Positions 501 through 64,000 of a stretch of 64,000 nt of DNA are shown here, piece after piece. Origin of the DNA: Eukaryota sp. TZLM1-RC (lineage: Eukaryota > Protista > Metamonada: BaSk clade). The notes beneath the pieces are model-generated. The model ran no database searches. It saw only the letters and a list, made by a program, of their open reading frames with translations, and had not been told where the DNA came from. Position 1 is the stretch's first letter. The number at the start of each line of letters is the position of its first letter. The position numbers and the translations under genes are program-made. The stretch covers positions 3,100,001-3,164,000 of the forward strand of contig JAUPSS010000002.1 of the NCBI GenBank assembly GCA_040285825.1. Direction: 5' to 3'.

Positions 501-929
501 TTATAGATTTTTTATATGGATCTGGATTAAACGTGGCTGAATTCAGAATGAATTTAGAAATTTAAGATATTCAACTTTGCACTGATAGTGAAATCAAAGA
601 AGCTAGTACCAGAAATCATCAGGATTAACTACAATCTGGATCAAGACTAGACAGTCAGCCCAGAAAAACAAAGTCAACAGCAAGATCAACCCCTCCTTCA
701 AAAATTGTAAGACCAAAACCATTAATTGTTGACTAACAAACATCAAAGGGTAAGCGAAAACGACAACAATAAGCACTGAACAGAGAAATTTGTATTGAGA
801 ATACAATGTTGAATATTGAGATCAGGAAGATTTTGACAAAAAGACCATTGAAACCGAGTATGGTTGGAACAATTGAGCCAAGTCTTAGCGGCTTCAAGCC
901 TGATCCATTGATTAAGTTGAAATCAATGA

Positions 930-1728
930 CGACAAATCAAAATCTTCCCACTGTTATGTGCTTTGATCTTGAAACCTATCAGGATGGTCATCTTTACCAA
1001 AGACATGATGGCCAATTTCTCCCTCCTGACGAGATTATCAACAAAAGGAGAAAAGAGGGTACAAATCTTTTGAAAAAGAAAACTGATGAGCAAATGGGTG
1101 AGTGGATTTCAGATCAAGAAGTGTTTTTACTTTCGATTGTTATTGGTAAATTTGACATAATTTCTTTTTGGAGAGTAAATATTCACTTATGTTGAGAACG
1201 AGTCCTCAAGTCAGCAGATTACCAGAAATTGCTACGGATATTCAGGCAGAAATTTTCTCTGACGAGAAAACCTTGCTTCGTAAGTTCTTAAACCTTATTG
1301 GTAATAATTAACCACATTGTTTTCTTAGTCACAACCTAATGCAGTTTGATTTACAGGTTTTAAAAAATAGATTAAATTATTTTGATTTGCCATTTCCTAC
1401 TGTTCGAGATGGTACAGCAATTGATGTACTCAATCAACTTTCACCAAGATGGAGAGAAGTTGTCATCAGGGAAAATGGCTTTTTTCTTTAAGATACTTGG
1501 TTTTTTGCCAAAAAATTCATAAAAATACCTTACGGACATGGATAAAGCAATCTGGCATATAGAATGATAAATGAAAAGAAAATCAAACTTCATCAGGAAT
1601 TTTCCCATATTTGACCAATTGATTGCTTAGCTACTTCTCCTCTGAGACAAAATTCAATTCAATATGGGCTTCATGATTGTATCCTTTGTCTGAAACTTTT
1701 CGTGCTGTTTCAAAAAGATAAATTCATT
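930..1728 (+). pseudogene. Family B DNA polymerase 3'-5' exonuclease domain remnant
   Basis: ExoI VMCFDLETY, FSDEKTLLRKFLNLI, ExoII SHNLMQFDLQVLKNRL and ExoIII YGLHDCILCLKL. Several in-frame stops and a frameshift. Confidence 0.7.
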
Positions 1729-2454
1729 TTATCATCTTATAAAACCATTCGAGCAACCGTCAACTCAATGGTTAAACATTCAAATGTGATACTCAAATTG
1801 AGAGAAACTGCTTCAAAATTTCAACAATTGCGAATTCACACCACTTGTTGCTTAAAGCTGTATTTACAGTCCCGATTTGAACGTAATTTAGTACTACCAC
1901 AAATATCTACCAAATTAAATGAATCATTAATGGCCAGAAGTCGTTATTCTTCAGTTGAGTATTATGGGCAAAAAATGGTAAAGCCAAAAAGTGCATTTCC
2001 ACAGGATTTTGAAGACTTTGTTTATGGTGAAGGAGATTATAGATTATCGACTACCTTTGAACAACAAAAGTTGAACAAAACTATAAGATATTTTGATCAC
2101 TTGAGACACAAGCCTGAGCAGTTTCCACGACTCCTAACTGATGGATTCAGTAGACCTCCCGAGTATATGGACCCAGTGATGTTTGCAACTTTTGAGAATA
2201 ATTTGAAATTAAATTGTGAAAAACATTTCAATCGTTTTAATAACGTCTATTTTGCCAAAGTAGATGTGGAAAATGTGTTAGCAGAAATGCACAAACTGGG
2301 TGGGTACGCAACACCATTATCTACAATAATTTCATTATATAGACTGAGACTTCGAAAATTCAAAAACATATTTTTAGTTGATGGTAGAGATTACTTGAGC
2401 TTTTTAAGACTTGTACCTGAAATATTTCAGACCTTCTTGATGATGAGTTTTTAA
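1729..2454 (+). pseudogene. Fanzor1-like N-terminal (WED/REC) fragment
   Basis: YKTIRATVNSM...IHTTCCLKLYL...LPQI...EYMDPVMFATFENNLKLNCEKHFNRF resembles my recollection of Fanzor1 N-termini. No RuvC follows. Recognition by eye only. Confidence 0.55.
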
Positions 2455-5033
2455 ATTTGTGTCAAGATCATGATATTTGAAACAATGAATGTGACGAAAT
2501 CATTTATGATCTTATAACGTCATTTACTTGTCAAATTGAGAATTTAGTCACGGATGAAAGTCTGAGTGCCTTTACTCACTTATTCACAGTTATAGCTTCT
2601 AGTTTTCACAAAAACTGTATCTTGAGATGTTCAAGAGAAGGTAAAAGAAAAATATACTTGAAAATAGAACCTACAAAGATCCAAAAACATGTAGACTTTA
2701 CAGACACACGTAATCAGATCTATCTTGACCGTAATCAACCTCAAACAGTTAAGAACTGAATGATTGATGATGACTCAGTCGTTTATGTAAACATAAATAG
2801 AGACTATAAATAAAGAGAATTACTCTCAATATTTGGTAAAGACTCCGATAAACAATTACAAACTATTAAGTACATCAACCATGAAATACAATTAACATTA
2901 AATACAACTAATAATTGACAAGATAATGATAAAACAAAGTAAGTAAATTAAACCCAAAGATAAATTATCAATTATTGAATTAATTTAATTAAATAATAAT
3001 TATATTAGCAATATGAATTGTTATTTTTTCAACATCAGTAATGGTAATTATGGAAGATTTGGAATTTGATTTTTGTAATAACAGGCCAACAGCGGTCAAG
3101 GTAAGCTCAGAATTATCAATCAAAATGATTGAATCAGTATTTGAATCTAAATCAGAATTACCAAGATGCCACGTATACCAACTGAAAGGAAACAGGAGAA
3201 AATTAAACCCAAAGATAGATATTACATTGATGAAATTGAAATACAAATAATGCGTTAAAAAACCAGATGACATTAGAGGAAAACCTAGTTGGTTAAAATT
3301 CAGTAGCTTCATCAATGACCAATTTTGATTAAAGCATTAATATACTGAACATCTGGTTAAACACAATAAAGATAGAATCAATTAGTTTCAAATAAAATAG
3401 AAACAGAAGCACTAATTACAATTAGCGGTCTTCAATAGGATTGACAATTGATCCTTCATCTTGAGAATAACTTTACAAAGATTTGCTGCTTAAAATCAAA
3501 AACAGTTGCTTTGAAATTAGAAGTGGTAATTCAAAATGACCATCAGTAGCAGTTGAATCACGAACAAGAAGAGCTTCTTAATCAATAGTAGAATCAGTAG
3601 TAACAATTGATTGAGATTGACAACCAACAACAAGTACCTCATCAAAATCAACATTAGATTTAACAAGGGTAATAAGAGGTTCATCATTAGCAAACCCACT
3701 AATAACTTTACCATCAGAATCAACTGGACCTAAAGTTTTGACATTGGTGAAAATGAAGTATCAGTAGTAGAGCGATAAATTCAATAATTTTGAATAAAAT
3801 TAAAAATGTAAATGTTATGGATTTGTCTAAGTGACCACAAGAATATATACACCTCTGGTCAAGGGTTCGAGTCTCAGTGATGGCACAAAATTAAGCTATA
3901 CACAGAACAAAGACAAAGGAGAGAGCACACAAATACAGTTTGTGAAGGATCATCAATAACTAAAGAATACTTACTTGCTGCTGGAAATCAAATGCGGGTC
4001 ATAACGAAGAAGAAGTGCATACAGTTTAATTGTGGGGTATGTCCCAAATGGTGGAATTGGAAGAGAGATCGTAAAGGGAGAAACAATGGTCTTCAAAGGT
4101 AGAGTTAATGAGGGAGAAAAGCCATTGAGAGGCAACAGTGAAGAGGACGTAAAAAATATGCCAACAACAGAAACCTTGAGTGACTGCTGACCAAACGACG
4201 GGAAAGGCTCAATGGAGGCGAAACTAGTAACCTTGATATCGAAGAAGAGAGGTTGGAGACCGTTGGAACTGCTCAAGATTTCATATGTAAGAAAATCCAG
4301 GTCATTTCTCTTTTAGAAATCTATTTTTAGTCAGTGTTATAACATAATAACTTATTGACCATGCCATACGCGTACGGTGTTTGGCATTTTGCATATGATT
4401 GCATGTATGGCACCATATATTATTAATTTATTTATATTTATTTATATTAATAAGAGGTATTATGAAAATGGTATGCGTCTCACTTTCAATTTCTCCCTCA
4501 CCACTTCCATTCTCTTCTCCAGTGTCGTCTTCATGTTGTTGACATTGAGTCCTGGTGGCTAGGAGCAGGAGTTTTTACTAACGTAAATACTTGCTTTTTG
4601 GTGACCAACACACTGCTGCAATGGTTTCAAAATAAATTGATAAGATTTCTTAACTTTTGTATGTTCCTACATTGTCAAAATCCCATAACGTAATACCTGA
4701 AAATTTACCATTTTTTTTACTTTACACCCGCTTTGTCCTTGACTCCTCAGCTTCGTATTATCAGTCTTAAAACCTTACGTTTATTCTTCACAAGCCAAAC
4801 TCAAACAGTCAATTCAACGTCCGTTATGAGACTGGAAGAACTGTGATTGACAAAAATCACTACGTAGGTACAGGTAATTTTTCGAATTGCCTTTGGTGTT
4901 CGTGAAAGAGAAAACTATACTTTGTACACCATTGACAATTGTTATTCAAGCTGAAAAATATAGTTTAAAAAAGGATTTTTAAAGGAGGAATTGCCAATGA
5001 ATATGTACTAAAACATCTAAAGTTTTGACATTA

Positions 5034-5112: not shown

Positions 5113-5241
5113 CTGCATTTTCCCTATTTCAATATAAATCAGCTAATATGAATATGAAACAAAACTATATACAAGAAACTAAATAACTATAAATAAATAT
5201 ATATAGTCGATATAATATAAATAATCGATATAAACTAATAA

Positions 5242-8200
5242 TTAGCTTCGCTTCCTATTTCTGTTACTACGTCTAGGCCTCGTGGAAGGCGTAGACTCAT
5301 TGGTGGTACCTTTACGTTGGCTAGTTTTACGTTTACCAATTTTCTTGTTATTCTTATTGAACAACTTGTAAGCTTCTGAATGTTTAACTGAATGGAGAGG
5401 CTCTTCTGTTGTCTCACCGCCAAACCATTGTACAGTACAGAAACTACGTGAATCAGAACTATATTCTGAGAGGATTTTCTCCATAACGTGTTTTTCAACA
5501 TCGCCTGCTGCGACTGCTTTGAGGTACTCCATATCCTGTGTGTTTTCAGCATTATAGATTTTACAATCTTTCTTGGCAGCTTTTAATTCTGTGCCAGTAG
5601 TAAGATTCTTCAATAATAATGTGGATTTGGCGGGAAGGTCAATAACTAAGAATGGTCCATTCCAAGATCCAAGTCACCAATATTAAATACTATAAAACAC
5701 GAATAAGTATTATTTACTGAAGACGGAGTATTAAATGTTTGGTGACGCTCTGCTTCTTGCCTTTTTTGTAGACGAGTATTTTTCAATTTAATGTCATCTG
5801 ATAAAGGAATATTAGTTTCGAATTTGGATAAATTTCCTAATATGTTAGCAGGGTCTGTTCTTGGACTAATCGAAGAACCGAACATAAGTTCGTAGGGGGT
5901 AAAGCCAGTTTTTCTGCTTTTAGTAGAATTTATCAATAGTTGGGATATAGGTACATAAGTAGATTAATTTCCGTAATCATTAAAATCTATTAATAGTTTC
6001 CTTAAGCATTGGAGAACGTCTCTATGTTTACGTTCTGCATGTCCATTACTTTCTGAATAGTGGGGAATTGAGTTACTCATCTCAATCGCTAATCTATTAC
6101 ACACTTTTTTGACAGTCTCATTGGCGAACTCAGGTCCATTATCGCTATGAATTAACATAGGCATGCCAAAAAATGCGCAAACGTTCCAAATCAACGCATC
6201 TGCGGTTTTTAAGACATTGAGTTCTTTTAAAGGGAATAAAATTGTATATCCAGTAAAAGAGTCTACAAATACTAATAAATATTTATTTCCTTCGTTGTCG
6301 GTGTTCAGAGGTCCATTTGTATCGACGTTTAATCTGGCAGATGGACGATCTGCCCATAGAGATCCTGTGGAAGGTGTTTTTGACCTTTTAACTGGAGCCG
6401 TTTTTTGACAAGTTGGGCAACTTTTGACATAATTTATGAGGTCCTTTCTCATATTAGGCCAGTAGAAGTCACTTTTGGATAGTTTGTGTAAACTATCGTT
6501 TTTGTTGGGGTGGCCAGATTGAACTAAACCATGTATTAATAATAGTGCCTGTTTTCTGAGGTTCTTTGGAATTAAAATTATATTTTTATTATTTTTCCAA
6601 ATTTGAGTATTTTCATCTAGAATTGCATTTTCAATTCTAAAGAGTCATTGTTGTTTTGGGCTATTTGTTGTTCAGATCTTATTTTAGAGAACCAAGAAGA
6701 AAAATGGGTAAGTCTTGGTGTCTACTTAAAGATAAAATTGATGGGATATCTTCAAAGTCCGAATCAGAATCATCGCCTAGTGGAGGTACCTTCGTAATTC
6801 GAAAGTACAGTATCTGGTATATTCATACTACAAATAGAAGGAGTTTCCTCGTTTTGATCCAAATCAATATTCCTCGATAGCATATCTGCCCAATGGTTAT
6901 CTTCACCAGGTTCATGGACTATATCAAAGTCGAATTCAGATAGTATCGGCAGCCATCTCTTCACAATTCTATTTTTCTCTGGGGCTGCGGCCAGGAATGC
7001 AATGTTTTTGTGATCACTGAAAATTGTCAAATGTCTAGTTAATAGGTAGCTTTCTAAACAACTTTCAGTTAAAATCAAGAGTATTGCATATAATTCTTTC
7101 TGTAAAGCGGACCATTTTCTTTTGTTTCTGTGAGTAATCAACTATAGAATGACAAAGGTTTCACTTTCCTTTTATTTAGCGGGGTTCCTGCAGGGGAGTA
7201 GGGTTCAATTTCTTGCCAAATTACGCCTCCTACTGCTACATCTGAAGCGTCAGTACTTATTAATACTCGCTTGCCCGCAGCTGGTAATTCAAGGGGCATG
7301 TGGTTTACAATTAAATCTTTGATTTGCTTTAGATAATCGTCATGCTCATTGGTTTATTTAATAATTCTAGGTTTTCCTTTTATTAAATCGTTAATTGGAG
7401 CTATTAATTCAGAAATTCCAGGAAGCCAATCTCTTATGTAATTGATTGATCCAAACAAGGAGTGAACCTCTTTCACTGTTTTTGGTCTGGGTATTTTCAT
7501 AAGGGCTTCAATATTTTTCATGCTGATAAACCTAGCTTTGTTCTGGAAGGTGCTTCCTAATATGTCAATGGGGTGTTTGGCTGTGACGAATTTGCATTTT
7601 CGTAAACCAATGTTTACCCGTCTTTTTCTGGCGCATTCGAGGACTCTTTGTAGTCTTCTGTAGAATTCATCAAATGAAGTACCGACTAATATGATGTCGT
7701 TTATGTTTATGAAAACGCCGTCTATTTGGAAAATTTCCATCATTACATTTTGGAATACTGCTGAGATATTCTTTAAACCGAAGCAAGCTCTTTTGAACAT
7801 GATGGACCTCCCAGGTATTGAAATTGATGTTTTTTCAATATCTTTTTCTGCTACGTTCATTTGCCAGAAAACTTTTGGTAAATCAAGTGTGGCAATGTAG
7901 TCTACTTAAAAATTTCAATATGTCACTAATCCGCGATAAATTAGGTTCGACAGAAATTGTATGGGCTTTAACACCATCTTTACGACTGAAGTCACCAGTG
8001 AATCTAGGTTTTCTATCATCTGGATAGATAACTAGGATAATTGCAGAGCTTAATTTATCAAGAGCTTTGATGAGCTCATTCCTTTCGTTAAGGGGAATTT
8101 CTAATACCTTTTGGGTATCCCCAACCATACCGAGAGTCTGAAAACTAACGTTTCTGCCACTTTTATGAGTATAGCTCCACAGAGGAGGAAGCTGGTCGAA

Positions 8201-44151: not shown

Positions 44152-46356
44152 TCACTGTCTCAACATAACGGTACTTTCCCAAACTAATTCACCATCAACA
44201 TCATTTAAAACAAAGAATCCAAGTCTCTCAAACTGATACCTTGCACCAACGCTTTCTTCCTTCAAACAAGCCTCCCCTCTTGCATTGTAGTGTTGTAAGC
44301 TATTCTCATCAACCAACTTCAGCCACTCAGCATCTGGTAGAGCTCCAGGATTCTCAATATCACCCTTAAACAATGAAGAGTAGACATTAACACTGAGATT
44401 GACACTTTCATCAGAAACCCAATGAATGGTGACTTTAGTTTTGGTCTCTTTAGGAAGTGATTCACAACAGATAGACTCTACCACTCCATTCTTCTCGGTA
44501 TAATCAATGCACCTGACAACACCCAAACCACGCAAACGGACAGTTTTTCCTGGAGCGAGGCGGAAAAAGCCAGGTTCAGGGTTAGTTTTGAAATCAGAAT
44601 TTTCGATATAAACAGTTGATCCTGACTTGACAACTCTTGATCCCCTTTCTGAAATTTTGGGGTGGTTCTGGAGAGTTACAGTTTCGGAAAGATGACATTC
44701 ATCATCCTTGATAACGACCTTTACAGGGTTTAAAACTACCAATCTACGGTCACAATCCTCATCCAATTCTGACCTAATGACGTGATCAATCAATTCTGGT
44801 CTGATTGTATTTGACCCCCTAGAAACAGAAACTAGCTCACAAAACTTTCTAATAATTGATGGAGTTACCCCTCTTCTGGCAAGCCCATTCAATGTGTAGA
44901 GACGAGGATCAGAAAAAGAGGTCAAAATTCCCTCTCCAATCAATTTATTGATCCTTCTTTTTGACATTAAAGCACCATGAATGTTTAATCTCGAAAACTC
45001 CCATACTAAAGGACAATAACGATCTAGAGCATTTAAAAGCCAATAATACGAATCTCTTCTAATTTGAAATTCCAAAGTACAGAGAGAATGAGTTATATCT
45101 TCATATGAATCAACCAGACAATGAGTGAAATCATAAGAAGGATAAATGCACCATCTGTCCCCGCTCTGAGGATGGGGGGTGTACTTGATCCTGTAAGCTA
45201 CCAAATCCCTTAAACAAGGGTTGTCAGATGTCATGTTCATTTTCATCCTGAGAACAGCTTCTCCTTCAGCAAATCGACCTTGTCGCATCATTTCAAATAA
45301 CTTTAGGTTTTCTTCAACAGAACGATCTCTATATGGGGAGTTTGTCTTTGTCTCACGAAGCTTAGCAAACTCATCACCAGTTAAATGATCCACATAGGCC
45401 TTGCCCCGTCTAATCAACTCGACTGCATCATTATAGAGTCGATCAAAGTAATCAGAGCTGTGTGTAATCTTACTTGGAGAGAATCCTAACCACTCAACAT
45501 TAGCAATAATGTTCTGGAAAAACTCAGTTTTTTCGGCTTCAGGGTTAGTATCATCAAATCTTAGAATGCATTCCCCCTTAGCCTTCTCTGCCTCCCCAAA
45601 GTTCAAGCACATACTCTTAGCATGACCGATATGGAGGTACCCGTTGGGTTCAGGTGGAAAACGAGTGATAACACGGCCTCCGGTTCTTTTGAGGTGATCG
45701 TCAAGGTTTTGAGGAGAGTTGAGGGAAGTGTTCTCCGAGGGTGCAGGGAAACGTGGTCGGTCAGATACTTCGGGGATTACAACATTTTTGACCTCTTCCA
45801 AGACTTCTGATGACTTCTTGGTTGGTTTTGACTTGGCTTTGGCCCTGTCCTTGGCTCTCTTGGCAGTCGTTGTACTCTGTCGTTCTTCTTCTGTTAACGG
45901 GCCGATCAATGCGGCTATCTGGTCATCCATGGCCTTCTTCAGCTGACGACCATCTACCCACGGAAGACGGTCCTGGATAGATGTACGGATGGGCAGAGTG
46001 TTGTAGGCGTAGCGTTGAGTTTGAAGCTGGGAGGCATGCTCGGCAATAACTTCCTTGGCTGTGGCCTGAACTTGGTCATCGGTGTAAGTAACGCCAACAC
46101 CACAGTTATGTTCAAATTGAGACTTGGCTTCAGGAGATGAAAGGTCTACTCCCGAAGAAACGAGACGACATGCTTCAGTGACTTGCTCTGAACGGTTGAG
46201 TTTGCCATCTAGACATAGTTGGAGAATGTAGTCCTGGAAGGGTGTTTCAGGAAGAGATTTGTGAAGGACATGAAGTCTAACACGAGTGGGGTTGTCAAGC
46301 TCGGATGGGTCAACGTTGAAGCGCTGGGCAACAGCTTTGTCAGCCTTGGACGGCAT
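44152..46356 (-). CDS. QARS1: Glutaminyl-tRNA synthetase
   Basis: TRFPPEPNGYLHIGHAK, RFDDTNPE, ITHSLCTLEF, MSKR, YQFERLGFF, with eukaryotic N-terminal extension. Confidence 0.96.
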   Translation of the reverse strand: MPSKADKAVAQRFNVDPSELDNPTRVRLHVLHKSLPETPFQDYILQLCLDGKLNRSEQVTEACRLVSSGVDLSSPEAKSQFEHNCGVGVTYTDDQVQATAKEVIAEHASQLQTQRYAYNTLPIRTSIQDRLPWVDGRQLKKAMDDQIAALIGPLTEEERQSTTTAKRAKDRAKAKSKPTKKSSEVLEEVKNVVIPEVSDRPRFPAPSENTSLNSPQNLDDHLKRTGGRVITRFPPEPNGYLHIGHAKSMCLNFGEAEKAKGECILRFDDTNPEAEKTEFFQNIIANVEWLGFSPSKITHSSDYFDRLYNDAVELIRRGKAYVDHLTGDEFAKLRETKTNSPYRDRSVEENLKLFEMMRQGRFAEGEAVLRMKMNMTSDNPCLRDLVAYRIKYTPHPQSGDRWCIYPSYDFTHCLVDSYEDITHSLCTLEFQIRRDSYYWLLNALDRYCPLVWEFSRLNIHGALMSKRRINKLIGEGILTSFSDPRLYTLNGLARRGVTPSIIRKFCELVSVSRGSNTIRPELIDHVIRSELDEDCDRRLVVLNPVKVVIKDDECHLSETVTLQNHPKISERGSRVVKSGSTVYIENSDFKTNPEPGFFRLAPGKTVRLRGLGVVRCIDYTEKNGVVESICCESLPKETKTKVTIHWVSDESVNLSVNVYSSLFKGDIENPGALPDAEWLKLVDENSLQHYNARGEACLKEESVGARYQFERLGFFVLNDVDGELVWESTVMLRQ

Positions 46357-57869: not shown

Positions 57870-58990
57870 TCACCTCTTTTTAATCCAAACCTGGAAACTG
57901 TGGGTATTACGATCAACCTTAAACTTAATTGTTGGCTCCCCTTCACAAAACTCCCAAACAAGGTTAAATAGTTTTAAGCTACCTTTTCCAGTTATTATCC
58001 TGATAAAATCAACTTCATTCTGGTGACACCACTGCAGTGACCTAGTAAGACATTTCGCAGCCCCTTCTGCATCAAAGTAATGCAGATCTAGAAGAAAACC
58101 CTCATTTTTGCGTTGAGGTAACACTGAATCTTGAATTTTGTTTATCGAGTTGGTTAGAACTTTCACATGGTAAGTTGAATCGATTGTCTTTATAGAGAGA
58201 AGTCTTGACCTGCTATTCTGAAGAGATGCCAAATGAGAAAGGTCTTGGTGTTGGAATGGTATAGGGTTAGGGTTAGGCTTTCGATGGATATGGGCGGTTG
58301 CTCTCTGTGATTGCTTTCTTGATTGAGTCTGTGATTGCTTTCTTGATTGAGCATTTGATTGATTGCTCGCTTTGGAACTAACTACAGATTTTGACGATTC
58401 ATGGGTTGGAATCGAACCCTCGACCATGGAGGTAGAACTCGATCGACTTTCCCAAATAGACGATTCTTCAGAACTATCCAAAACAGAATAAGAATTATTT
58501 AAAGAATAGAATTCTTGAATAATATAGATTAATGTATCTACTGGTAAATCATGGTATTGAATGATCCATTGTGTTGCAATTTCTTCTGACATGCCGGAAA
58601 ACCTTTGCAATAGAGAATCCATCATTTGAGCTTGTTTGATGCTGAAAACCGGTGGATGATTAGTCACAGTAGGAGTTGGGATAGATGTGTAGGCAGAGAG
58701 ACAAACATGGCACTCAGCAAAGACGAGATCAGCAGAGAGAAACGGAGAGGATAAGGTAATGGATTCAATAGTGGCAAAGATAGTAGATCTAGGGAGATGG
58801 GGAAACTCAGCTACTAGAATCTCAGAAAGCGTGTCAATGTCAATCGAAGTAATGATTGGTTTAACAAAAAGATGTTATGAGAACAATAAAGATGGGCCAG
58901 CGTTACCACTCTCACGGACCTAAGAGAAGAGAGAGGTCCGAAGAGGTGAAAACGTTGAATTCTCTTTTGGTTTTCGTGGTATGCAAACAT
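57870..58990 (-). CDS. Smr-domain protein with CUE-like N-terminal segments; 5' end needs a GT-AT intron at 58872-58906
   Basis: LDLH...A...L...IRIITGKG (Smr). The frame is open up to 58874. ATG 58990 joins it in frame through a 35-nt intron. The 5' model is tentative. Confidence 0.65.
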
Positions 58991-59066
58991 TGAATCACTA
59001 ACTCTCTACAGTGAAACCTACAGTGTTGCCTTGTATGAACAAAAATCTCAATAGTATTCTTCTCAA

Positions 59067-61277
59067 ATGGTCACTATTATTGATACTTTTACATTTGCAG
59101 TTGGAACCATATTTGTTGGTTTACTTATCATTATTGCCATTAGTAGCCTCAAACATCCACAGTAAGTTTACTTATCCTTCGTACCTTACATAATCACAGC
59201 AATGAGGGGACTATATGGGGCGATTGCAGCAGCAATTCTTGCGGTTGTCTGGTTTTCGATTCTATTCCTCACAGGTGTTGCATGGGTATTTGCCTTCATT
59301 CCCTTTATTATAGGGGCTGTTTTGGGCCTCCTTTTAGCACGCCTTGTTGCAATGACATCTTTACCGTAATGTCTTCCATCTGTTTGCTTACTGTAGCCAA
59401 ATGGTTGCTCTGCTGAACGGATTAGGTGGTTTAGCGGCAGTACTGCTTGCATTTGCTACATTTTACGAACCAGGGCTTGCAACTACGTTACCTCTTTTAC
59501 TGGCAATATTCTTACCCCTCTGGATTGGTACTGTTACCTTTTTTGGTAGTATGATCGCTGTTGCCAAACTCATCGGGAGGCCCAAAGTTCTTGGTATGTA
59601 CACCTTTAGATTGATCACAGCCAACGATTATCCTGGTCCTCTAAGAATGTTTGCCTTCCTTTTATCATTTGTCGCACTTGTCCCATTGTTGGTCTTGTTC
59701 TTGATTTTAGCCACTATGGCATCTTTTCTCGGGCTATGGATTCTATTGGCTATAGCGGTTGTCAGCGCGATAATGGGCGTGTATGTACTATGACTTCACT
59801 TACCGAAGCCTATTTGTCATTGGGATTGGGGGTTTGTTACAGATTGGATTTACTGATTTTAGGTGGTATGTTTCTTCTTCTATCCTGCTAACACTAGCTG
59901 ACATGCCTGTCGCAATTTCAATACTCAACTCATTGTCTGGAGCAGCTGGAACCACAGCAGGTTTCATGGTTCGAAATGATCTGGTTGTCATTATCGGAGC
60001 CATTGTTTTCGCTTCAGGTGCAATCCTCGCGTGGCTGATGGCACGTGCAATGAATAGAAATCTAGGAAGGGTTTTACTTGGACAATGGACAGGTACAGCG
60101 GCTACTTCCACTAAAGCAGAGAAAACACGAACACAAGAATGGAAAGCTGAAGACGTTGCCCGTGCTCTTTCTCAGGCCAAGCGTGTGATGATTGTACCAG
60201 GTACTGCTTCTCTCTTTCTCATCTTATTTCAGGTTATGGTCTTGCTGTCTCCAGGGGTATTGTTCTTGTTGAATATTGCTCATTTCAGCGTATTGTAACC
60301 TTCTCAACTCACCTCAGCCAATTTGCTTGTCAGGAACTTGTTGAGTTTTTGCAATCCAAGGGTGTCAAAACTGTTTGTTATAAATCCATTTCTCTCACCA
60401 CATACCTATGTCTCTCATCCTGTTGCTGGACGAATGCCAGGACATATGTCTGTTCTGCTTGGTGAAGCTCGGTTTGGTCCTATTTCCCTTCTACTCATTT
60501 CAGTGTTCCATGGAAGCAGATTCAAGATGTTGATGATGCCAACAGAGAAATTGAAGGTGTAGACGTTTGTGTTGTGGTTGGAGCGAATGACACTGTTAAC
60601 CCTGCTGCCATTGATGATCCACAGTCTCCTATTGCTGGTATTGAAATCCTTCCACACTAACTACAGGTATGCCAATCATAGAAGCTCACCGTGCCAAAAG
60701 AGTGGTAATGATCAAGCGTAGTCTTGGATTTGGTTACGCCAAGATTGATAACCCCCTGTGGTATAGAAGTAATTGCTACATGATGTTTAGTGATGCAAAA
60801 CAGGCCTTAGAAGGTATTCGCGACGCTTTACCTTCAGATTTTAAAGCGGGCGGTGCCAAGCATGTAGTTTCTGAAGAAGTTGTGGATAAGGAAATAGTAG
60901 AGGAGGAAGAGGTGTTGACTTGGGCTGGCCTCGACATTGATCGCCGAACCAAAATCTTCGTTCCAAAAGAGGTATTCAAAGATGAAACACGGGTTGCATT
61001 AGTTCCTGAACATGTCAAAAAATTGTCAAAAATGGGATTCATGGTTTATGTTGAGAAGGGCGCAGGAGAGAGGGCAAAATTTGATGATTTAGCTTATTTA
61101 AATTCAGGGGCCGTCATTGTGGATAATTTTGACGAGGGGGTAAAATTACTAAAAAACGAACAGGATTTTGTAACTGTGTATGAACCGGTGCAGGAAGATG
61201 AGACGAGTAGTGGTCATACAGAAAGTGGTGAAGTTTATGATGATGAAGATCAAGAAGTTGACATGTTGGCGCCCTAA
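59067..61277 (+). CDS. NAD(P) transhydrogenase, beta-linker-alpha fusion, 12 introns, interrupted in the alpha part by an LTR element
   Basis: Spliced model gives HPHTAMRG, MTSLPQMVALLNGLGG, IGGADMPV, MNR, PGYGLAVSRAQ, HPVAGRMPGHM, GANDTVNPAA, GMP, KRSLG.GYA, then alpha N-terminus VPKE...ETRVAL.P...VEKGAG. Introns: 59162-59194, 59366-59396, 59594-59620, 59781-59808, 59832-59862, 59866-59897, 60201-60232, 60257-60288, 60290-60317, 60373-60403, 60472-60503, 60638-60666. Confidence 0.9.
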
Positions 61278-61419
61278 GGCTTATATAATATGAATAGAAA
61301 ATAAATCAGACTTTTCTTTACTACAATAGACTTTAGGCAACAATAATTATTGGCCATTTTAAAGTCAAAAGGTATACCATAACTTCAGCATTAGTGAACA
61401 TCTTCAGACACTTTACAGC

Positions 61420-64000
61420 ATGTCAGACATCTCCCAACCAGATATCTCTGACTCTAATCCACCACTTAATATGCAGCAGGTACCAGCGTCACATACACAT
61501 GATATAGAGGGCAACGAGGCAACGGACCCGGATCCCACCTCCCCCTCCCTTAATGTAGAAGAAGATGAAAGAGTGGACGAGGTCCCTCCATCTTCAACAA
61601 CAGAAGAGGTAACGAGAACGGACCCGGCTCCCTCTCCCCTCAGGAAAAAAGAAACAGAAGAGGTAACGAGAACGGACCCGGCTCCCTCTCCCCTCAAAGC
61701 AATGGAAGAGGCAACGAGAACGGACCCGGCTCCCTCTCCCCTCAGGAAAAAGAAACAGATGAGGCAACGAGAACGGACCCGGTTCCCTCTCCCCTCAGGA
61801 AAAAAAGAAACAGATGAGGTTACGAGAACGGACCCGGCTCCCTCTCCCCTCAAAAGCAATGGAAGAGGCAACGAGAACGGACCTGGCTCCTCTCCCCTCC
61901 CAATTCTAGAACCTGTCTCAAAGGGAACGGATGGAGATCCCACCTTAGACACGTCTTCCCCATTAGGAGAATATGAAGAAATTCAATCTCAACTAGATGA
62001 AATGGAGGGAGAAGACGACTCTTCTGAGGGGTTCTACAAGTTATTAAGAGAGGACGCGGAGGCTTACCTCGAACCAACAGATTTCTGTCTGTTCGAGCAA
62101 CTTCCCCTTTATGGAGTTACGTTCAAAAAAAGAGGCAGAAACGTTGGTTTTCAGACCCTCGGAATGATTGGGGATACCCAAAAGGTATTGGAAATTCCCC
62201 TCAATGAAAGGAATGAACTCATAAAGGCACTCGATAAATTGAGTAGAGAGACATTCGGGCGTAACGCAGAACGCCGCCCCAGAATCTCTGGAATGGACAA
62301 GAGAATCAATGAATTGATGTCTCTTCCCATCAAAGATAGATTGGATTGGAAGGCCTCCTTCCTAGATCAATACGGCAGGAGAATAAGGTTTCTCTCCATC
62401 GAACAGAGAAGTAGGACCGACTCGGAAGACATCCTACAATCCAAATTGCCTGCCTGGTTTGATCCTAACTTTGATACGGAAATCCATAATTACACGGAGC
62501 TGACAGAGGGTGCACCCACATATTTTAGGGAATTTATGGAGCAGGAGGATAGTAGTGAACTAGACAAGCTTGAACCAGTAACCCCCTGGTTTGATGCAGA
62601 CGCTCTAAATAACATTCATACGGAACGATCAGCTGTATCCACGTATAGGAGCCGTCCTAACAACTACACCCAACAACATGGTAACTCGTTCACAAAACAA
62701 CGAGAGTTTAGACAATGGGTAACGGGAGATCCATCCACATCTCTCCACCTTCCCAAACTGCCTGTTGTAGCCCCTATAATTTCTGAAAAAAGCCAACCAA
62801 TACAGGTCTGCTCTATCGACAGCATACCCGATCATGTTCCAACAGTGAACGTCCCGGAACCTGTAACAAGACAAGACGTTGCACCTCAGGAAGAACCAAC
62901 TTCCTCTCAACCCATGGAAAGTGAAATTGGAGAAGACATTGAGTTGAACGGGCCAGTCGTTGGAGAAACGGCTCCTTTTCAACCCTCAGTAAGAGACTCT
63001 TCTTCCGATAGACCTATGCGTATTGAGGACCTACAATCCTCAAGAAGAGCTATTGACATGAGCATAGCTAGTAGCCTTCATAGACAGATTGATCCACGGT
63101 CTAAGGATATCGACTATAAAAGACCTCGATTATCCGCTGATGACCCTATTAACAAAATGTCTATCATAGCTTTTCTTTTAAAATTTCAAACTTGGGATAA
63201 ATACGGGCGAAAGATAGTTAATAGAAGCTTCGAAGCCCCAGGTCAATCAGATTGGACCAGAGCCTTTATGATAGCTACCCAGCTATTTGGAGAAGGCCAA
63301 GCAGAAATAACCCAAGATAGGATTAAAGATCTCCCCAAACATATACGCGACGAGATCACCAGGGATACAACACAGCCTTTGGTAAGGATTGATCCAGCTA
63401 TAACAGATAAGCTCGGACCCCCAATCCACCATTATGATTTATTTAGGAGCATGATGATGAGCACTTGCCCCACAGGAATATCCAGCATGATCGACCCTAG
63501 CCTTCTATCTAGATGGCAGAGTCAAGGTTTACTCGGTGTTGATTATACCGACGCCGACGTCATGGTATTTCTGTTAAAAAGAACGCAATTCACATCATAT
63601 CATGAGGCTTGTACAGCTCTAATGAAGCCTAGAATAAATTGGAGGAAAATCCACAATAGGCATGAGGCTGACAACGAGTTTGGTCGTTATGTAGAAGATT
63701 TTGGAGACGTCTTGAGAATGACCACCTACATGACCGACCTAACCATCCCTGATTTAATTAGAGGAAGCAGTGGGTTGATAACCATATCTCCCGCTCTAAT
63801 AGCCGAGTACTTCCTTATGGGTCTGGATAACTTTGCTATATCAAGCGAACTCCTCCCAGTATGGACTAGGGAAACCTTGTGGGACTCACCGAACAGAACA
63901 ACTCTACTCGATTTGATATCGACAACGAGAAGACATTTCCTCGCTTGGTGTTACACAGCAGGAAACAAGCCCACAATGGATGTACTAAGGAACAGGGCTA
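61420..64000 (+). CDS. Retroelement ORF1 (gag position), at least 860 codons, open to the window edge
   Basis: Manual frame-1 translation from ATG 61420 (MSDISQPD...) has no stop through 64000. It is absent from the ORF track, presumably because it has no stop in the window. Confidence 0.88.
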   Translation, partial: MSDISQPDISDSNPPLNMQQVPASHTHDIEGNEATDPDPTSPSLNVEEDERVDEVPPSSTTEEVTRTDPAPSPLRKKETEEVTRTDPAPSPLKAMEEATRTDPAPSPLRKKKQMRQRERTRFPLPSGKKETDEVTRTDPAPSPLKSNGRGNENGPGSSPLPILEPVSKGTDGDPTLDTSSPLGEYEEIQSQLDEMEGEDDSSEGFYKLLREDAEAYLEPTDFCLFEQLPLYGVTFKKRGRNVGFQTLGMIGDTQKVLEIPLNERNELIKALDKLSRETFGRNAERRPRISGMDKRINELMSLPIKDRLDWKASFLDQYGRRIRFLSIEQRSRTDSEDILQSKLPAWFDPNFDTEIHNYTELTEGAPTYFREFMEQEDSSELDKLEPVTPWFDADALNNIHTERSAVSTYRSRPNNYTQQHGNSFTKQREFRQWVTGDPSTSLHLPKLPVVAPIISEKSQPIQVCSIDSIPDHVPTVNVPEPVTRQDVAPQEEPTSSQPMESEIGEDIELNGPVVGETAPFQPSVRDSSSDRPMRIEDLQSSRRAIDMSIASSLHRQIDPRSKDIDYKRPRLSADDPINKMSIIAFLLKFQTWDKYGRKIVNRSFEAPGQSDWTRAFMIATQLFGEGQAEITQDRIKDLPKHIRDEITRDTTQPLVRIDPAITDKLGPPIHHYDLFRSMMMSTCPTGISSMIDPSLLSRWQSQGLLGVDYTDADVMVFLLKRTQFTSYHEACTALMKPRINWRKIHNRHEADNEFGRYVEDFGDVLRMTTYMTDLTIPDLIRGSSGLITISPALIAEYFLMGLDNFAISSELLPVWTRETLWDSPNRTTLLDLISTTRRHFLAWCYTAGNKPTMDVLRNRA
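61603..61899 (+). repeat. Six 45-55-bp tandem repeats (EEVTRTDPAPSPL) in ORF1
   Basis: Core GAGG(T/C)AACGAGAACGGACCCGGCTCCCTCTCCCCTC repeated with alternating short linkers. Confidence 0.9.

Follow-up and report, generated by a model that had tools for sequence, protein, structure and literature searches.

A single cytosine at position 60289 of the window, the 64,000-nucleotide stretch of DNA that was analysed from the soda-lake flagellate Skoliomonas litria, is very probably a true and constitutive one-nucleotide exon (probability about 0.88, judged from the DNA sequence). The window comes from contig JAUPSS010000002.1, and record positions are obtained by adding 3,100,000 to window positions. 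C60289 is bounded by an AG and a GT, each of the flanking introns is complete by itself, and the base is needed to keep both the reading frame and the length known from homologues. Intron 8 ends in CTCAT TTCAG and intron 9 in CTCAC CTCAG, while G60256, C60289 and C60318 join to a GCC codon (Ala), which yields YGLAVSR-A-QFACQEL. An earlier note on this DNA had read the site in the same way, with an Ala codon assembled from three exons. Its coordinates, lengths and border sequences for the two introns and the base between them were exact, and no other reading of the DNA came close to the one-base exon with regard to splice signals, frame and path scores.

Features of the host gene and of the one-base exon with its flanking introns, in window positions
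Feature	Position	Strand	Length (nt)	Details
Host gene	59067..61277	+		NAD(P) transhydrogenase beta plus a short N-terminal alpha domain I piece; Pfam, exon by exon
Intron 1	59162..59194	+		GT-AT; A at -7
Micro-exon	59863..59865	+	3	GTG, inside GGADMP; between introns 59832-59862 (31 nt) and 59866-59897 (32 nt)
Exon 8	60233..60256	+	24	Ends the Gly of PG, codes YGLAVSR, gives the G of codon 326
Intron 8	60257..60288	+	32	GT-AG, phase 1; donor GTATTG; putative branch A 60282 (-7)
Exon 9	60289	+	1	C; second base of codon 326 (GCC, Ala); 3,160,289 in the record
Intron 9	60290..60317	+	28	GT-AG, phase 2; donor GTATTG; putative branch A 60311 (-7)
Exon 10	60318..60372	+	55	C, third base of codon 326, then QFACQEL...GVKT
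Intron 10	60373..60403	+	31	GT-AT; A at -7

The host gene and its local intron rule

The host gene is deposited as P9112_003602 (TZLM1-RC; 614 aa), and it was modelled with 13 exons and 12 introns whose summed length of 366 nt equals the deposited range minus the coding length of that entry. Its exons matched Pfam PNTB in order, and the last exon added positions 2-77 of the 136 of AlaDh_PNT_N, which is half of that domain. All exons were free of stops, the frames at the remaining 11 junctions were clean, and identity to the RCL orthologue was 57% throughout. The orthologues in RCL and in Skoliomonas sp. GEM-RC were located by protein search. The assembly has a Nanopore R9.4 base; it comprises 16 contigs with 41x Nanopore coverage and 206x Illumina polishing, and its gene models were made with GeneMark-ET, AUGUSTUS and PASA plus manual curation (PMC11316075).

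The 12 introns of the host gene were 27-33 nt long, and all of them carried a YTNAY motif with its A seven bases before the 3' end. The 10 introns other than 8 and 9, along with two introns of a paralogue, had been found without a branch filter. Seven further introns in the window and seven in RCL also fit, and since these were chosen with the branch filter they are not independent tests of the rule. Introns 8 and 9 each obeyed it (27-33 nt, putative branch A at -7), and in all introns examined the putative branch A stood at the same distance from the 3' end, at -7. Introns 1 and 10 are GT-AT introns that likewise have an A at -7, which suggests that distance from the branch A fixes the position of the 3' end. 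A piece of run X1 matched the DNA exactly across the AT end of intron 1, and the three-nucleotide exon GTG agreed with the deposited protein. In RCL, the RPS8 gene contains a 54-nt intron (locus 8015-8068), nearly double the usual length, that showed no notable hairpin. Longer introns can thus occur in the clade, which weighs against reading the 61 nt as two introns.

A multi-copy element (a retroelement) begins at 61264, and the final codons of the deposited model, together with its stop, lie within it, so that the tail of the gene is affected and its core untouched. A beta subunit followed by only half of alpha domain I and an acidic tail was seen in all three skoliomonads (60669-61277 in S. 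litria, and in RCL and GEM-RC), which makes the truncation ancestral; as both orthologues end at about the same place, the short alpha piece would be older than the insertion of the element. The second S. litria transhydrogenase is the paralogue P9112_002137, a full-length protein of 1010 aa in beta-alpha order (locus 501-3592). Transhydrogenase is usually a mitochondrial membrane protein. S. litria has been proposed to be without a mitochondrion-related organelle, and the main text of the genome paper makes no mention of a transhydrogenase (PMC11316075). Elsewhere in the window, a GlnRS gene (44152-46356) had its best matches in GEM-RC (73%) and RCL (66%), and synteny around it was not conserved in either of the two.

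Splice signals, chance and rival readings

Weight matrices trained on 17 other S. litria introns, a small set, gave the donors of introns 8 and 9 a score of 5.8 each (leave-one-out range 1.0-8.6) and their acceptors scores of 10.1 and 12.9 (leave-one-out range 1.9-11.2). The chance of an equally good internal pair of acceptor and donor that also restores the frame was 3e-5 when the interior was shuffled and 2e-5 at intron base composition. Enumerating all in-frame, stop-free paths with at most two cuts, GT or GC donors and AG, AT or AC acceptors produced 757 paths. Among these, the two-cut path came out on top with 34.6 bits; the runner-up among paths of homologue length had 21.4, and neither AT/AC acceptors nor GC donors offered a better one. 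Back-to-back mini-introns on both strands of the window amounted to two pairs only, those around the 1-nt and 3-nt exons of the host gene, with 0.1 expected per shuffled window. If 12 introns are placed at random, 7-10% of genes of this kind would contain a 1-nt exon, and 2-4% would contain two exons of at most 3 nt, as the host gene does. A hairpin folding the 61 nt into one short intron was looked for and not found (z -0.6).

The earlier note had held that one 61-nt cut, or use of the donor at 60295, breaks the frame, and I found both to be so: the 61-nt cut ran into a stop after 60 codons, and the donor at 60295 shifted the frame when tested with the acceptor at 60317. Retaining intron 8 or intron 9 alone also caused a frameshift. 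Two in-frame alternatives had been overlooked, however, namely the retention of both introns and a non-canonical cut of 60 nt. Of 261 homologue motifs, 259 had PGYG and HPVAG 32 residues apart, the same spacing that results from the two-cut path. At the site of the split codon, 238 of these 259 had Ala, 14 Cys, 5 Gly and 2 Thr, and the RCL orthologue has VSRAQF inside one exon, as the two-cut path gives. The match of this Ala to the PntB motif was indeed obtained, but it lends weaker support than had been implied, given that the intronless GEM-RC orthologue and the deposited S. litria model both have Gly (VSRGQF). GEM-RC is the sister of S. litria (PMC11316075), which makes Ala and Gly equally parsimonious, so that the residue alone decides nothing; the case rests on the splice signals. 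The GEM-RC orthologue (locus 3175-4930) has GIGSADMP and is split by two frameshifts near 3935-3960, and this copy may be a retrocopy or mis-assembled.

Transcript aligners are unable to place a one-base exon, and odd borders are typical of them. The deposited VSRGQF, with a net 60 nt removed at the site, arises only from single 60-nt cuts with GT..CA, TA..AG or AT..GC ends, and it could therefore point to one non-canonical intron of 60 nt (GT...CA 60257-60316 or TA...AG 60258-60317), taken out in a single step and leaving a GGC codon. The Gly of GEM-RC and the apparent tolerance of this genome for non-AG acceptors (GT-AT) would fit as well. Such an intron is nevertheless very unlikely, as the GT..CA acceptor (-17.9) and the TA..AG donor (-2.6) score under every known site, the length is double the normal one, and a perfect internal acceptor and donor would be left unexplained (p about 3e-5). 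Moreover, the deposited model reads Asn at the next junction from a CT..AC cut, two bases from the GT..AT intron that lies there, which makes its borders look like aligner shifts; the model thus hints, indirectly, at the removal of a net 60 nt from the RNA with misplaced borders. An assembly error is equally improbable: an exonic base (e.g. one more C beside those at 60318-60319) would have been lost, and the true intron would be a GT-AG intron of 61 nt. This would agree with the Nanopore R9.4 base, the frameshifts in the GEM-RC orthologue of the same project and the good scores of the ends of a 61-nt intron. Run X1 (DNA-like, share 0.10), examined on 58600-61600, matched 59109-59431 exactly, in two pieces, as well as the repeat that begins at 61264, and its depth was zero at 60216-60316, which leaves room for such an error; scans of metagenomes by protein and by exact exon-8 DNA gave no match. 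Illumina polishing at high depth and the clean frames at the other junctions argue against it, and the internal signals would have to be a 1-in-30,000 accident that happened to correct the error exactly.

The absence of splicing is less probable again, whether both introns were retained or a partial in-frame path was used (e.g. 60262-60288 alone). The unspliced path is in frame and free of stops, but it would insert 20 extra residues into the GYG-A/V nucleotide-binding helix of domain III, where the homologue spacing varies by at most 1, and the deposited model removes 60 nt here. Solved domain III structures align without a gap across the motif, which likewise argues against the retained form, although it may occur as a minor isoform that escapes nonsense decay. 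No likelier than retention is that this gene copy is decaying and has one 61-nt intron followed by a genuine frameshift. The repeat boundary inside the last codons and the full-length beta-alpha paralogue would be in keeping with decay; set against these are the lack of stops, the intact signals at 12 of 12 introns, the identity to the RCL protein and the similar end points of both orthologues, with an alpha piece older than the insertion.

Proposed excision and origin of the two introns

I infer that splicing takes place in vivo and that the 61 nt act as two complete U2-type mini-introns, to be excised successively by a separate spliceosome each. Recognition would span each intron by itself (intron definition), exon definition over a single base being impossible. 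A donor would pair with the first branch A ~20-26 nt downstream, with the cut falling 6 nt past that A, so that donor 1 would join acceptor 1 rather than acceptor 2, 61 nt away, and the C would be kept. The lengths of 27-33 nt and a 3' end apparently measured from the branch A suggest that donor 1 takes branch 1 and that skipping is disfavoured. Since skipping of the C would shift the frame and destroy the NADP(H)-binding domain, the exon would have to be constitutive.

U1 recognises a donor by pairing with the final three bases of the exon and the first six of the intron. At donor 2, the three bases on the exon side consist of the acceptor-1 AG plus the C, and eight bases separate this donor from branch A 60282. 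With this overlap and the branch A so close, both introns could probably not be held at once and would be cut in turn. After either cut, the C would become the end of an ordinary exon, and no special fold would be needed. Co-transcriptional emergence would favour the removal of intron 8 first; in plants, the downstream intron is more often removed first (PMC8831610).

None of the intron positions are shared between S. litria (12) and the RCL orthologue (7), the nearest being 5-6 nt apart. Codon 326 is without an intron in RCL, GEM-RC and the paralogue, and the exon and its flanking introns are not conserved in the orthologues. A recent gain of introns in the S. litria line, rather than their loss elsewhere, is most likely and the simplest reading of these sequences: two introns would have been gained 1 nt apart, with nothing to penalise the short exon. 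A caveat to this is that the GEM-RC copy, with its two frameshifts, may be a retrocopy or a product of mis-assembly. The exon itself would need no special function, only a spliceosome that is indifferent to exon length. Introns 8 and 9 ranked 26th of 171 pairs in mutual likeness, i.e. there was no clear sign of a duplication. In the distant paralogue (codon 312) as in the RCL orthologue (4987-5015), the second Gly codon of PG(Y/F)G is split by a phase-1 intron, which the two could have inherited from a common source or gained in parallel.

Known one-base exons and wider meaning

Recursive splicing at zero-length exons proceeds stepwise through ratchet points, at which AG directly adjoins GT, in introns of many kb. 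The S. litria site is similar in that an acceptor stands against a donor and removal would be stepwise, but it retains one coding base and its introns are ~30 nt long; a zero-length recursive splice site was rejected because the sequence reads AG-C-GT, not AG-GT. Fungal stwintrons of the types [D1,2]/[A2,3] are complex intervening sequences removed by two consecutive U2 reactions (PMC5587772). In them, a splice signal of one intron is split by the other, and the mRNA keeps no base between the two, whereas both S. litria introns are complete; a nested reading (G|C donor) would remove 62 nt and was discarded as out of frame.

One-base exons are already known from plants and fungi, and the S. litria case extends a known class. 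The earlier note had called them very rarely documented, which is fair but dated in view of the published APC11, VPS55, CYP621A and Coprinopsis cinerea examples. In Fusarium CYP621A, the one-nucleotide exon lies in a 139-nt span, is conserved in 20 orthologues and is confirmed by reads (PMC12940212). The likeness to S. litria is close: the single base is the second position of a codon within a conserved motif, stands between phase-1 and phase-2 GT-AG introns, and was found via a double-length gap and an intronless relative. The S. litria span differs in that it measures 61 nt, occurs in one species and is known from the DNA. The Arabidopsis APC11 1-nt microexon sits in a 422-nt span, and its sequential, intron-defined removal has already been proposed (PMC4674806), and another has been published for plant VPS55 (PMC8831610). 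These too are internal spliceosomal exons of 1 nt that are essential for the frame and were overlooked by annotation, but the plant exons are ancient and experimentally shown, whereas the S. litria exon, with flanks of 32 + 28 nt, is seemingly recent and was read from DNA. C. cinerea has 13 microexons of 1 nt, 57 of 2 nt and 27 of 3 nt with long-read support (PMC12230235), a graded series in an intron-rich fungal genome of the kind that may also exist in S. litria. Among metamonads, Giardia, Spironucleus and Trichomonas have a fixed distance from the branch to the 3' end, with a fused branch point and 3' site (PMC6679479). Short, uniform introns and a fixed branch distance are common to these diplomonads and parabasalids and to S. 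litria; the former are, however, intron-poor with a strict consensus, whereas S. litria has dense introns with a degenerate YTNAY signal, some of them ending in AT. A literature search found no paper on skoliomonad splicing.

The S. litria exon has shorter flanks than any published one-base exon that was found, with two introns and the exon in 61 nt and donor 2 overlapping acceptor 1, and it would be the first one-base exon found reported for a metamonad. This overlap would force stepwise excision, and both the order of the cuts and the rate of skipping could be measured in existing RNA-seq. A tentative extension, whose odds fall a little short of even, is that the S. litria spliceosome has no lower limit of exon length. 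Introns would then be defined by a ruler (a donor, ~30 nt, a branch A at -7 and a loosely read 3' dinucleotide), recent gains could fall 0, 1, 2, 3 or 4 nt apart and be cut in turn, and the genome would hold dozens or more unannotated exons of 0-3 nt whose lengths are near geometric down to zero. If true, S. litria would offer a natural system for pure intron definition, with C60289 as one instance of a genome-wide rule, and the value of the present case would rise accordingly. For annotation, the present case means that deposited S. litria gene models contain wrong junction residues and overlook micro-exons, which matters because the claim of organelle absence rests on the S. litria proteome. 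A GT-AT intron with an A at -7 is also present in the RCL orthologue (locus 5171-5200), and the deposited RCL model has overlooked it, losing 15 residues (VLLGEAKVPWDSIEE).
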